Assembly (NCBI RefSeq): GCF_006345805.1
Contig: NC_043010.1
Location: 38,626,001-38,690,000, forward strand
Direction: 5' to 3'
Source of the DNA: Octopus sinensis
Taxonomy: Eukaryota
DNA: 64,000 nucleotides
A model generated the notes under the pieces. The model made no database searches, had not been told where the DNA came from, and saw only the letters and a program-made list of their open reading frames with translations. Numbering within the stretch: position 1 is the first letter of the stretch; the number at the start of each line of letters is the position of its first letter. A program made the position numbers and the translations under genes. Below, piece after piece: positions 3,429 through 62,654 of this stretch.

Positions 3429-4557
3429 TATTTATCAAATTAGTTTGACTCGAGAGTCCATAACAGCGTGAGGCATATACATGTAGTAATATCCCTTAAT
3501 ATAATGAATGTATTTATATTTAAAAGGGAAAATTATATATTTTGTATTAATTTTTTCCTCAACTGGTTTTTCACGCTGGCTACTTCATAAATTCTTATAT
3601 AGATGTTATCTTTATATATTACACACACACACACCACACGCGCGCACACATATATGTGTATGTATATCTATCTGTCTATCTGTCAGTCTGTCTCTCTATC
3701 TATCTATACACATACATACATGCATATAACTTCATATATATGCTGCGTGATCTTCGAGTAACCATGACATTCGGAGCAGCAACAACGAGTATATATTACA
3801 TTCGAATTCCTCTTGATTACTTTTTCTCTTCCTTATGGTTCCAAACGTCTTCCTTTCTCTCTTCCTTTCTCTTACCTCCTCCACAATTATATAATAGATA
3901 ATTATATATTTTTTCGGTTTATATATTCCATCTCCGAATCCGTGCAACATCCTTTCTAATAACGCCTTTTTGTTGCATAGCAACTGATCATTTAAATCGT
4001 TTCAAAGTCATTGGAAGAAAAATTCGAGACAAATCAACATTGCCACCGTCGCCATGTTTTCTTTAGTGAAGAAAAACATCGACTTTTGTTCATCAAAGAT
4101 AAATGATTAATCGTATTTGTTTTATTTGACTTTAATTATCTCATTCTGTTTAGTAATTAGAAGCCTTAATCTAGAAAGAGTGAAAGAATATAAGAAAGAA
4201 AATTTGAATTTAATATGAAGAAGGGAATGCTAATTTATAAAGGAGAATATATTTCTTTTTTTCTTCATAAGTTATTAATTAAAGCAATATCAGTAGATTA
4301 CTGTCAAATTATCATATAAATGTACACAAGCTCGAGGCCCTTGACGGGTGAAAATGAAAATGAATTGGTCCCAACAGATTTCATTAAGAATACTGAGGAT
4401 CAGTGATCATTAATAATAAAAAAAAATGAAAAACCAAGGAGAGAGATAAATAGAAAGAGTCACGTATAAGAATCTGGTCTGCTTCCTTGGAAAATTAAAA
4501 TATGAAATTGTGGCGGGAATGCTTTTCTAATTTTGTTAGTTTTTACATAATGATATA

Positions 4558-4785
4558 TATTTCTTTACTACCCACAAGGGGCTAAACACAGATGGGACAA
4601 ATAAGGACAGACAAACGGATTAAGTCGGTTACGTCGACCCCAGTGCGTAACTGGTACTTAATTTATCGATCCCGAGAGGATGAAAGGCAAAGTCGACCTC
4701 GGCGGAATTTGAACCCAGAACGTAACGGCAGACGAAATACGGCTACGCATTTCGCCCGGCGTGCTAACGTTTCTGCCAGCTCGCC
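4558..4785 (-). mobile_element. SINE family 2, tail-2 subfamily, full length with 18-bp TSD
   Basis: tRNA-like head (ggcgagctggcagaaacgttagc...gggttcaaattccgcc) and central gcctttcatcct.cggg.tcgataaattaagtaccag domain. TSD tttttacataatgatata at 4540-4557 and 4786-4803. Confidence 0.9.
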
Positions 4786-5223
4786 TTTTTACATAATGAT
4801 ATACTGAAGTTGAGACGTTCAAAGAAGTTCAGCATGCGTTCGAATCCTGCTGAGCTCTGTTTAGATTTTTGTCTCAAAGGAAATAATAGACAAACGTATA
4901 ATAAAACGCATGCTATTGGTGACCCTTTCGCTTTTTAGAAGTAATATGTCCTTAGAAAATATAACCTCAACTGGCCCTTAAAAAGTAATTCAGGCGTTAG
5001 GGAAATTTAGCTGCTATTAATGGAAAGTCGGGCAACCATGTAGAAGCACTTCTTTTGATCGAACATCTATTAGTTTCGTACTGGGGTTGGTTAAGCTGTG
5101 CCCCCAAAGATCTGGAAGTTTTTGCTCATACAAAAAATTATCATTGATATCCAGACGAACCTTTGCAAAACAATTGAGTAAAGTAATCTTTTGTGTTTTC
5201 TCGTAGACTTGGAGGGTGACCGA

Positions 5224-5302
5224 TATCTATCTATCTATCTATCTATCTATCTATCTATCTATCTATCTATCTATCTATCTATCTATCTATCTATCTATCT
5301 AT
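5224..5302. repeat. (TATC)n microsatellite
   Basis: Direct reading. Confidence 0.97.
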
Positions 5303-5450
5303 TTCTCTCTCTCTCCTTATCTTTGTCTCTATAAAATCTTTCTCTTTCCTGATTTCTTTCTCACTCTCACCTCTCTTCCTCGTTATCTCTTTCTCTCACT
5401 CTCTATTTGTCTGTCTATCTGTATAATGATCTATCTTTTTCTCTATCTAT

Positions 5451-5816
5451 CTCCGTCGGTTATGACGACGAGGGTTCCAGCTGATCCGATCAACAGAACA
5501 GCCTGCTCGTGAAATTAACGTGCAAGTGGCTGAGCACTCCACAGACACGTGTACCCTTAACTTATCTCTCAGGGAGATTCTACGTGACACAGAGTGTGAC
5601 AAAGCTGGTCCTTTGAAATACAGATACAACAGAAACAAGAATGAAAGTTGTGGTGAAAGAGTACAGCAGAGTTCGCCACAGACCCCTGCCAGATCCGCGT
5701 GAAAATGTTAGGTGTTTTCGCTCAATAAACACTCACAACGTCCAGTCAGGGACTCGAAATTGCAATCCCAAGACCACGTGTCCGCTGCCCTAACCACTGG
5801 GTCATTGAGTCTCCAC
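5451..5816 (-). mobile_element. tRNA-derived SINE, head A + tail X
   Basis: Minus strand starts tgtggagactcaatgacccagtggttagggcagcgg (A/B-box-like) and ends ...ccctcgtcgtcataaccgacgg. The tail is shared with 31454-31773. Confidence 0.85.
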
Positions 5817-6606
5817 ATCTATCTATAGATCTAGTTATCTATGAGCAACTCTTTTTCATATCTAGAAATACACACACGCACACACATATACATACACATA
5901 TGCAAGTACACTTACAAGATAAACAGGATCATACACCAACGCCTAAAATTTTCGTTCAGCTAGCAGTTTTGTATAGATTACCATAGAGTTCTCAACGAGT
6001 TGAAAGGAATCTTTTCAATCCCTCGCATGAATATACCAAATACAGTAAAGCCAAAACAACAACATATATCTTCTTACACGAAATCTTTATTTTTGGATAG
6101 TTATTCTGTTTACTTTGTAAACGTTATATACACAGCATTACACGAATGAAATATGAGAGATTGCGGAGTACTTTTATGATTTCGTGTCACTATATCACAA
6201 GCGCAATACATTCACACGCATATACCCGTATATACAGTCATACATACGTATATACACATATTCATATACATATATATATATATATATATATATATATATA
6301 TATATATATATATAATAATATATATTATGCACATACATATATATATGCACATACATATATGCAAGAATATGAAAAGATACATTCATATATATGTGTAAAT
6401 ATGTATACACAAACACACACACCACATACACATCGGCAGAAAATTTAGAAAAGTAATGAAGTTCCGAGGACTTCCTACAAAGCGCTTATCATGTCAAGGG
6501 AAAAAATATATACTCATGTATTAGGTTCCATTTCTCCTGTTTGTTCCTCCAAACCTATGTATTCATAATAACTGCCTCTCTGTCTGTCTGTCTGTCCGTC
6601 AGTCCA

Positions 6607-60689: not shown

Positions 60690-61145
60690 TTGGCCCAGGC
60701 CACGACTAACTCAATAGTACCACCTGGGAAAGTCTTTTAGTTAATTATTTCGGGACATCATGGACCACTCACGCAGAAATTTATTGTTGGTTGAGACATA
60801 TGCAGGTTTAGGTGGTTCATCCGGTATTTACTAGAGGAATTTTCCACGCACCGTTTGAAAGTTGTGGGTCTTTTTTTACTTAAATTTCTTTCGGGATAAC
60901 ATTGCGAAGATCAGTGAAGAAATTGTGTCGCAATTTTCTTATGTGATGTGATCTCGACCTTTGTAGGGGATGCATTGCACGGGAGCCTAGTCTTGGGTGA
61001 ATTATTAACATAATACCGATATCATTTGGATAATATTGGTGGAATATTTTCCACATGGTGCAAATAATGTATCGCTCACGGTGGCGTTTCAGAGAATAGA
61101 GTTCCAGCTGATTAAGTCTAGCCCAAGAATCAAGCCCCATCATTC
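60690..61145 (-). mobile_element. CR1/L2-group LINE 3' end nested in the Tigger-like MITE
   Basis: LDSWARLNQLELYSLKRHRERYII..MWKI...PNDIGI...HPRLG...IPKEI...IPDEPPKPAYVSTNNK. Confidence 0.85.
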
Positions 61146-61521
61146 CATTTACTTTATTAGTGATTGATCTTTGTTATGCTACGATCCTCATTATGTCTTC
61201 TTTTATTTTTTTTTGTAGGGGGACCACAATGGCAGCATTATTATAAATGCAAAACAATAGCACACACTCACCTCCTGAGTTTCAGTTTCCATACAGTGCG
61301 TGCGATTATTTGTTTACTCATCTACGGTACACTACGTATTTTCTTTTAATATATTTAATTAACATGTTATACAGTGCAGTACTGTACTGTATTTTAATTT
61401 ATTAACATTTAGGAATAATTCATTTTTAGAAATAATTGAAATCTAAAAAATATAAATTCCTATCGGCCGAGGAAACCCGCGATATACTGAGGAGTCCGCG
61501 ATATTAATTTAGATATATTCT

Positions 61522-61668
61522 TTACGACTATAGGCACAAGGCCCGAAATTTTGGGGGAGGTGGGTCAGTTAATTAGATCGACCCCAATACGCAACTGGTA
61601 TTTAATTTATCGACCCCGAAAGGATGAAAGGCAGAGTCGACCTGCGCGAAATTTGAACTCAGAACGAA
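61522..61668 (-). mobile_element. Family 2 SINE (tail 1, 5'-truncated) nested in the MITE
   Basis: ggcacaaggcccgaaattttggggg...gatcgacccc...gaaatttgaactcagaacg. Confidence 0.85.
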
Positions 61669-61813
61669 ATTTGAATATATTAGCCAGAAAAATTTGAGAT
61701 GTACTGTGTGCGCGATAGATGAATCGCGATATACTGACTGAGTGATTGGTGAACCGCGATATGGCGAGGGATTACTGTATATGCTATAGTATATTAAGGC
61801 AACAGGGTAATAC

Positions 61814-62048
61814 CTATTTCTTTATTACCCACAAGGGGCTAAACATAGTGGGGACAAACAAGGACAGACATAGGTATTAAGTCGATTACATCGACCCCAG
61901 TGCGTAACTGGTACTTAATTTATCGACCCCGAAAGGATGAAAAGCAAAGTCGACCTCGGCGGAATTTGAACTCAGAACTAGCGGCAGACGAAATACCGCT
62001 CAGCATTTCGTCCGGCGCGCTAACGTTTCTGCCAGCTCGCCGCCTGTA
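61814..62048 (-). mobile_element. Family 2 SINE (tail 2), full length with 10-bp TSD
   Basis: TSD agggtaatac at 61804-61813 and 62049-62058. Confidence 0.92.
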
Positions 62049-62654
62049 AGGGTAATACCGTTAGAAGGAGAATCTAAGAAGGCAAAGGAGGAGGATGGAA
62101 TTCGGTTACTGAATACATTAAGAGAAGTGAAGAAAAGTTAAGAACAAGACAAGAAAAAATGAAATGTTTTAAAGAATTTAAAAAAAACCCAAAGAAACTC
62201 TCAAATATCGCTTAAAGAAAATAGTTGAAAGAAAAAAAATGAAAAGCATATTAAACTTAAAACAAACCGTCGAGGAAAATGTTTTTAGAACAACTCATGA
62301 AGTTTCAAATGTTCTCAAAGAATCTCAAATTATTCAAACGTTTTAGAGTTGCAAAGCTCTGAAACGTCTTCTACTAACGGTGTAACTCTGTTGTCTTACT
62401 ATACTATGCCATACCCATGTTGTCTGAGATACATAAGCATATTAAAGTGTATATGTATACATGTCTGAAGTTCAGATCCTATACATACATACATACATAC
62501 ATACATACATACATACATACATACATACATACATAGTACATACATACATAAATGCATACATACATATATGCATACACATACATCAATACATGCATTCAAA
62601 TATACATACATGAATACAAACATATACGTATGCATACATACATGTGAATATCTT

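Follow-up and report, generated by a model that had tools for sequence, protein, structure and literature searches.

We analysed a short interspersed element (SINE) in a 64-kb stretch of the Octopus sinensis genome (NC_043010.1, positions 38,626,001 to 38,690,000; hereafter the window), set against the whole assembly of 2.72 Gb and 35% GC. Copies of this element have inserted by target-primed reverse transcription (TPRT), with target-site duplications (TSDs), at the bond between positions 46 and 47 of the SINE head. These events occurred repeatedly and independently in host SINEs of several families; the site is regenerated, and long arrays were expanded secondarily. The account we consider probable is that the SINE lineage with GGTAGT or GGTAAT tails inserts by TPRT, best at G/GTATTTCG in SINE heads (the slash marks the bond), that repeated hits build stacks, and that local duplication extends a few of them.

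The SINE and its insertions in the window

Positions are numbered on a full-length copy at 4558-4785 (minus strand, on which all SINE copies named in the first-pass annotation have their sense orientation). It consists of a head (positions 1-46), a CORE-like body and a tail (tail-2) reaching position 228; position 47 is the G of GTATTTCG. The 3' end of tail-2 reads ...GGTAGTAAAGAAATA(G) in this reference and is also written AAAGAAATA or ...GGTAGTAAAGAAATAG, and the target stretch around 46/47 is GGTATTTCG in element sense. A sister family has head and body in common with the reference and carries a different tail (tail-1), ending ...CCTAGAGTAGAAAA. B-box-like GTTCAAATTCC and A-box-like TGGCAGAA motifs can be read in the head; ARAGORN called no tRNA for the SINE, and Rfam gave no match. 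Judged by sequence, the best explanation would be a tRNA-derived, CORE-type SINE with a tail-2 that comes from an L1-like long interspersed element (LINE) family with an apurinic/apyrimidinic (APE) endonuclease. It may be likened, by type only, to octopus OR2, which is listed as a CORE SINE (PMC4758252).

TSDs of 11-18 nt flank eight SINE copies or dimers in the window and at sampled loci. The reference copy lies between 18-nt TSDs (4540-4557 and 4786-4803), with a target start of TATATC in element sense. The first-pass annotation had reconstructed its nick as ATAC/TGAAG; the TSD gives ...GATATA/CTGAAG, which places the claimed nick one base too far. A second full-length tail-2 copy, with a GGTAAT tail and a few extra 5' bases (61815-62048, minus strand), is flanked by the 11-nt TSD agggtaatacc (61804-61814 and 62049-62059; target start GGTATTA in element sense). 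Here the TSD gives ...GGGTAATAC(C)/GTTAG, in agreement with the empty site that had been claimed. Junctions of the form ...ATAC/CTATTTCTT (...ATAC/CTATTTC, plus-strand view) had been reported at 22360, 26854, 27033 and 61813, and all four are found at exactly these bases.

Three of the tail-2 copies are nested, and by BLAST against the reference each adjoins position 47 of a host SINE. The first stack (22198-22490, all units on the minus strand) reads, in element sense, head 1-68, tail-2 insert from 178, and host from 47 to the tail-1 end. Its tail-1-family host (22198-22360) is joined at position 47 to the 3' end of a 5'-truncated tail-2 insert (22361-22419; reference 178-228 plus a few bases), beyond which lies the head of the same host (22420-22490). 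Host positions 47-68 are duplicated, with one copy on each side of the insert, the second within the head segment; the head duplication of ~22 nt noted earlier is thus exactly 22 nt. The second stack (26692-27170, likewise on the minus strand) consists of head 1-~56, an insert from 149, a unit 47-228 and a tail-1 host from 47. The host, the 3'-most unit, spans 26692-26854 (position 47 to the tail-1 end) and is adjoined at position 47 by a seamlessly joined tail-2 unit (47-228; 26855-27033). This unit was in turn hit at its own position 47 by a 5'-truncated insert (reference 149-228; 27034-27115). The head of the stack (27113-27170) holds the second copy of a ~10-nt duplication (47-56) around this insert.

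Two of the three nested events in the window therefore arose by a staggered cut and TPRT. As each has its own 5' truncation and its own duplication starting at position 47, they are not copies of one ancestral dimer. Close by is a separate, headless unit of the GGCAAT tail lineage (27185-27360, minus strand), which starts exactly at position 47 beside non-SINE DNA.

On its 3' side the 22.2-kb stack is followed immediately by another SINE fragment (22092-22198), which has an internal deletion. The head of this fragment breaks off near position 13, and there it meets the 3' end of the tail-1 host of the stack. Thus, the other tail family also hits SINE heads, at a different position.

Use of the head site across the genome

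Genome-wide counts were obtained by pattern searches (at most 35 positions) over the assembly, so that exact-word counts are lower bounds. The exact 18-mer junction between the tail-2 3' end and position 47 (G/GTATTTCG) occurs 47,007 times, compared to 0 for a reversed control, and the 12-mer junction core with free flanks has 49,823 matches. With 145,526 tail-2 3' ends (GGYARTAAAGAAAT) in the genome, ~32-34% adjoin position 47. Exact head-to-body junctions number 54,398, an undercount since the word contains CpGs. Random insertion of all tail-2 ends into these exact heads would give ~1.5 hits, as against ~7,600 head insertions estimated from their 14% occupancy. In an unbiased 264-kb sample, 6 of 23 tail-2 ends were nested. 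The SINE head is thus indeed a landing pad, as the first-pass annotation had proposed, and by far the most used site, taking about one third of tail-2 ends. Strict site specificity, with nearly all copies in one target, was not observed: the rest lie in GGTA-type, TA-rich or other DNA.

Two lists cross-matched by hand for C1 (0-11.3 Mb) showed the junction one unit downstream of 14 of 100 exact heads, and a second junction was present in 2 of these 14 hit heads. Over all listed loci, 12 of 72 contain at least two junctions. The chance of a first hit is thus close to the chance of a further hit (~14%), as predicted if every insertion restores the site. Among the listed places, an exact head was found in 14 of 55 stacks compared to 8 of 56 solo copies.

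Many independent events

The first 100 junctions listed fall into ~72 loci over 13 Mb, of which 58 contain a single junction, ~10 two, one three and two eight. On the host side of these junctions are at least five SINE variants or families (GCCGTTA, GCCGCTA, GTCTTTA, GTCGTTA and GCCCGTCGC, plus a further family with CCCATYGCTA). GTCTTTA, the tail-1 type, accounts for ~14% of the listed junctions, and stacks that include a tail-1-type host have it as their 3'-most unit, which is also the arrangement in the window. In stacks of two or three units, subfamily markers mostly differ between units. Divergence between the units of three sample dimers was 5.5-8.8%, compared to 9.0% over all pairs. A single ancestral dimer as the source of the junctions, amplified as a unit, had been named as the finding that would overturn self-targeting; it is ruled out by the diversity of hosts and the heterogeneity of the short stacks. 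For the stacks at 22.1-22.5 and 26.7-27.4 kb, attributed at first reading to targeting of the SINE's own head, separate insertion holds, with two of the three inserts carrying duplications of their own, but the motif alone is insufficient.

Target sequence outside SINE heads

Verified TSDs define the target start at seven insertions. Four contain GTA: GGTATTA (window 62048; TSD 11 nt), GGTATTT (locus L008; 18 nt), GTATTC (a dimer at L011; 15 nt) and GGTAAT (L011; 14 nt with one mismatch). The other three are TATATC (window 4785; 18 nt), ATAATC (L017; 16 nt) and CATATA (a dimer at L007; 16 nt), and further sampled copies occupy tracts of (TA)n, (ATT)n or (ATGT)n. Since GTA is found in both TSD copies, it is part of the target and not a 3' extension of the element. 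The two bases preceding GTA in the four GTA targets are CG, AG, TT and TG. Of the target ATAC/CG proposed in the first-pass annotation, the ATAC half stands (G/GTA(T)(T) when read in element sense, a motif also found at head 46/47), while of the CG half only a frequent G remains.

A hand tally of 100 listed tail-2 ends, mostly of solo copies, showed xG/GTA after 17 of 66 GGTAGT or GGTAAT tails, compared to 1.2 expected (p = 4e-15), and ATATAT after 24 of 66. None of the 34 GGCAAT or GGCAGT tails was followed by GTA (Fisher p = 5e-4 for the difference between the tail types); 14 of them continued into ATATAT and 17 into AAATAA/AAGAA-like starts. TA-rich or (TA)n DNA is thus the second large target class. 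At ~50 non-SINE flanks starting with GGTATTT, the next base was A in 14, C in 7, G in 13 and T in 16 cases, which is background-like (p = 0.44), so the resemblance of non-SINE targets to the head ends after GGTATTT.

At three places (C1:14036358, C1:143730397 and C2:22469630) a tail-2 end is followed by GGTATTT, 1-8 further bases and then the 5' start of another full-length SINE. Such an arrangement would be expected if an earlier insertion targeted to GGTATTT was hit again at its upstream TSD copy, in which case TSDs would re-create the target outside SINE heads as well.

Lineage specificity and insufficiency of the motif

The habit of self-nesting belongs to the GGTAGT/GGTAAT tail lineage, in which ~40% of the tails are nested. 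GGCAR tails contribute only 3,181 junctions, mostly GGCAGT, with one array supplying 10 of the first 100 listed. GGCAAT makes up about one fifth of all tail-2 ends and has a nested share of ~3-4%. Because the preference is limited to one tail lineage, its determinant may be the 3' end of the SINE RNA, or homology, and not endonuclease specificity alone.

The motif is used very unequally. Scaling up the hand tally gives ~2,000 solo copies at non-SINE GGTATTT sites, in agreement with 2 of 66 in the solo-end list. As ~600,000 GGTATTT 7-mers are expected from base composition, ~0.3% of them are used, compared to ~14% of heads. This ~40-fold excess points to a further factor beyond the 7-mer. Candidates are pairing by the RNA 3' end, homology between the complementary DNA (cDNA) and the host that eases completion, recognition upstream of the nick, and chromatin state.

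An L1-like relative located in a microsatellite

A 5'-truncated LINE copy in the window (33930-34098, plus strand) lies within a (TATC)n repeat, and its last ~42 nt resemble tail-2 (83%). Its family has 28,499 first-look candidates genome-wide, with open frames of up to 1,150 aa. One decayed copy of ~4 kb (L014:5735-9840, minus strand) encodes Exo_endo_phos, RVT_1 and a C-terminal zinc knuckle, zf-RVT, and the best match of its endonuclease and reverse transcriptase pieces among solved structures is human L1 ORF2p. In all 13 LINE 3' ends seen (window 33700-34200 and L021-L032), the element ends ...AATAAAGAAAC/G and continues into (TATC)n, and the same repeat directly precedes 8 of 12 copies truncated at different points. 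The family may be specific for (TATC)n, or it may generate that microsatellite.

From these sequence features, the nearest relative of the SINE's mobiliser appears to be an L1-like APE element tied to one microsatellite; given such a relative, it is no surprise that the SINE has a target preference. The search for a LINE sharing the SINE 3' end, as suggested in the first-pass annotation, led to this APE-type relative and to no exact partner. Active LINEs of Octopus vulgaris include L1-Tx1, RTE, CR1 and Dong-R4 (PMC13282606).

Proposed mechanism of insertion and stacking

The first nick leaves a bottom-strand end ...(A)ATAC(C)-3', giving a duplication that starts (G)GTA(T)(T). The best site in the genome is head 46/47, both in the lineage's own heads and in the heads of no fewer than three further SINE variants or families. 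In the mechanism that we propose, the incoming cDNA would be homologous to the host, and the cut top strand (to the second nick) could anneal to it and prime second-strand synthesis. Homologous annealing of this kind would usually make the 5' junction seamless, producing a head followed by 47-228 and then 47-end, while a short cDNA would leave a truncated insert with a visible duplication of host positions 47-5x/6x. Head and site would be rebuilt upstream of the new unit and could be hit again, the stack growing at its head end with a chance of ~14% per step. In three arrays, later local duplication by unequal exchange has expanded the stack to 8-10 or more units with a ~185-bp period.

Over endonuclease specificity alone, we favour the view that the site is read when the SINE RNA, by a GGUAU(UU)-like 3' end, pairs with nicked DNA, with help from SINE-SINE homology. 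The trait is specific to one lineage, the homology ends at GGTATTT, and heads are hit ~40-fold in excess; in combination these features favour pairing by the RNA 3' end.

In element sense the junction (e.g. 26847-26862) is a near-perfect palindrome, GAAATA-GG-TATTTC. The tail-2 end is thus complementary to the head motif beside its landing point.

A more far-reaching version, which we regard as possible but put forward tentatively, is that of a self-homing SINE. The 3' end of the GGTAGT/GGTAAT lineage (...AAAUAG-GUAUUU) would have been copied from the head beside a nested master, and the RNA would pair with nicked heads and guide integration into them. If so, every insertion would supply a further master, driven by a head and with the right flanks, and this positive feedback would convert a dispersed SINE into a source of tandem arrays.

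Evidence against, and rival explanations

Several observations weigh against insertion into heads as the source of the stacks, or limit its support. Hand tallies of the flank classes covered the first 100 places of each list, on one chromosome. The 7-nt motif leaves unexplained why heads are used ~40-fold more often than generic GGTATTT sites. No LINE with the exact tail-2 was detected by a pattern that excluded SINE bodies, its 259 matches being almost all SINE deletion variants. Three dimers showed no age gradient, the divergence of 5' unit and 3' host from the consensus being 6.6/8.2, 3.8/2.2 and 6.0/4.8%, a sample too small to decide. Moreover, the seamless dimers at L007 and L011 each have a single TSD, equally fitting a retrotransposed dimer transcript.

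The last two points are what would be expected if dimeric or multimeric masters were transcribed from the head promoter through the tail and retrotransposed as units, with most junctions being inherited. Read-through of this kind is plausible, as no T4 terminator is present: the SINE consensus, read from sequence, is without any run of four T. However, at least five host types meet at one and the same junction, including the other tail family as the 3'-most unit, and the inserts in the window differ in their truncation points and each contain an internal duplication. Inherited dimers also do not account for a head hit rate (~14%) that equals the re-hit rate, or for the presence of the GGTA motif within verified TSDs at non-SINE targets. 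We therefore consider multimeric masters an improbable source of most junctions.

Still less probable as the main process is a SINE-derived satellite, in which a handful of original junctions would have multiplied chiefly through unequal crossing-over or replication slippage. Such spreading is seen in three long arrays, by shared private variants, a higher-order pattern or a 185-187 bp spacing. But the first 100 junctions occupy ~72 separate loci, 58 of them single, across 13 Mb, short stacks are heterogeneous, the units of dimers diverge like random pairs, and tens of thousands of dispersed loci are beyond the reach of unequal exchange. Satellite expansion is thus largely refuted as the main process and holds as a secondary one, in long arrays.

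Template jumping, with cDNA synthesis halting at position 47 of one SINE RNA and jumping to the 3' end of another tail-2 RNA, would suit the invariable start of seamless head-to-tail units, and of the headless unit at 27185-27360, at position 47, but is very unlikely: it has no way to yield the internal duplications 47-56 and 47-68 around truncated inserts, leaves the retention of heads in stacks and the GGTA preference at non-SINE targets unexplained, and predicts units starting at 47 beside unique DNA, which are rare (~8 of 100 in a strongly enriched list that left out the two main classes preceding position 47 and gives no proportions; by rough extrapolation a few hundred genome-wide).

Local duplication in long arrays

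Three arrays are longer than expected from a geometric process with 14% per step. At C1:8970274-8971799, the rare variant ATCAGC is common to 6 of 8 units. At C1:12138966-12140275, the tail variant alternates between GGG and GAG in a higher-order pattern, and C1:30020858-30022547 contains ten identical junctions at a spacing of 185-187 bp. In these three arrays local duplication has added to insertion as a secondary process. Private variants shared between neighbours, or higher-order periodicity, mark these arrays and are not seen in the ~58 loci with one junction or the ~10 with two in the list of the first 100.

A hammerhead or retrozyme tandem repeat was considered and rejected, since no Rfam family reached its gathering score anywhere in the window and neither strand of the unit contains a CUGAUGA core.

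A different kind of tandem repeat occurs at L007:3225-3335, where a TSD-flanked tail-2 copy is accompanied by seven tandem copies of the 14-mer GTATTTCGTCTGCC, corresponding to SINE positions 47-60. It could reflect slippage, or repeated cutting and filling at the same staggered nicks without an insert.

Comparison with known systems

Literature searches returned no description of octopus SINE stacks. Their closest counterpart in outcome is the insertion of Alu into Alu, for which hot spots are the TTTT/A sites of the L1 endonuclease in the A-rich linker and tail of resident Alus. In both cases the target preference of the mobiliser is met by a motif inside the SINE, and copies nest at preferred positions. 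Unlike in Alu nesting, the octopus site is one exact bond in a putatively tRNA-related head and not an A-rich tract, about a third of the copies of the SINE lineage use it, and it is rebuilt with each hit, giving regular head-to-tail stacks of ~183 bp.

Target-specific LINEs of the L1/Tx1 and R1 types, such as Tx1L, Kibi, Koshi, Waldo and Dewa, insert into microsatellites or multicopy RNA genes. The octopus LINE relative is similar in being of APE type and residing in one microsatellite, (TATC)n (13 of 13 copies), and its 3' end resembles the tail of the SINE. The SINE differs from those LINEs in being merely preferential, with ~60-65% of copies elsewhere, and in having its preferred site in a SINE and not in a host gene or microsatellite.

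In the work of Luan and Eickbush and of Anzai and Fujiwara, R2 and R1 read-through RNA that includes downstream target sequence reportedly pairs with the nicked target. By analogy, pairing of this type would account for three features: the junction would be fixed by RNA-DNA pairing, the trait would be passed on with the SINE lineage, and homology would fade within a few bases. A difference is that homology at non-SINE octopus targets ends at GGTATTT. SINE- or MITE-derived satellites (MITE, miniature inverted-repeat transposable element) of molluscs and other organisms resemble the octopus arrays in length, ~185-bp period, a unit derived from a mobile element, and local expansion. In contrast to those satellites, the seeding step is visible in octopus: insertion has carried it out tens of thousands of times, and most loci contain no more than one or two junctions.

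The ~50,000 events show that a dispersed retroposon can give rise to tandem arrays by self-insertion and not by recombination alone, making visible a first step in the birth of a SINE-derived satellite. Two sister SINE lineages that differ more than 10-fold in target choice provide a natural system for weighing endonuclease, RNA 3' end pairing and homology as determinants of target choice in L1-like retrotransposition. The stacks total ~9 Mb, and in octopus genomes they will confound the annotation of repeats, the counting of SINE copies and the age landscapes.

Minor features of the SINE ends

In most full-length copies, the TSD is separated from GGCGAGC by (A)AGGC, sometimes with a few more unmatched bases. 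Either the reference starts ~5 nt downstream of the actual 5' end of the SINE, or the 5' junction gains additional bases. At the other end, one variant of the tail, in which the last six bases stand twice (...AAAGAAATAGAAATAG), recurs at nested junctions and solo ends (e.g. C1:15943111 and C1:30056293), which suggests slippage of the reverse transcriptase on the terminal GAAATA at initiation.

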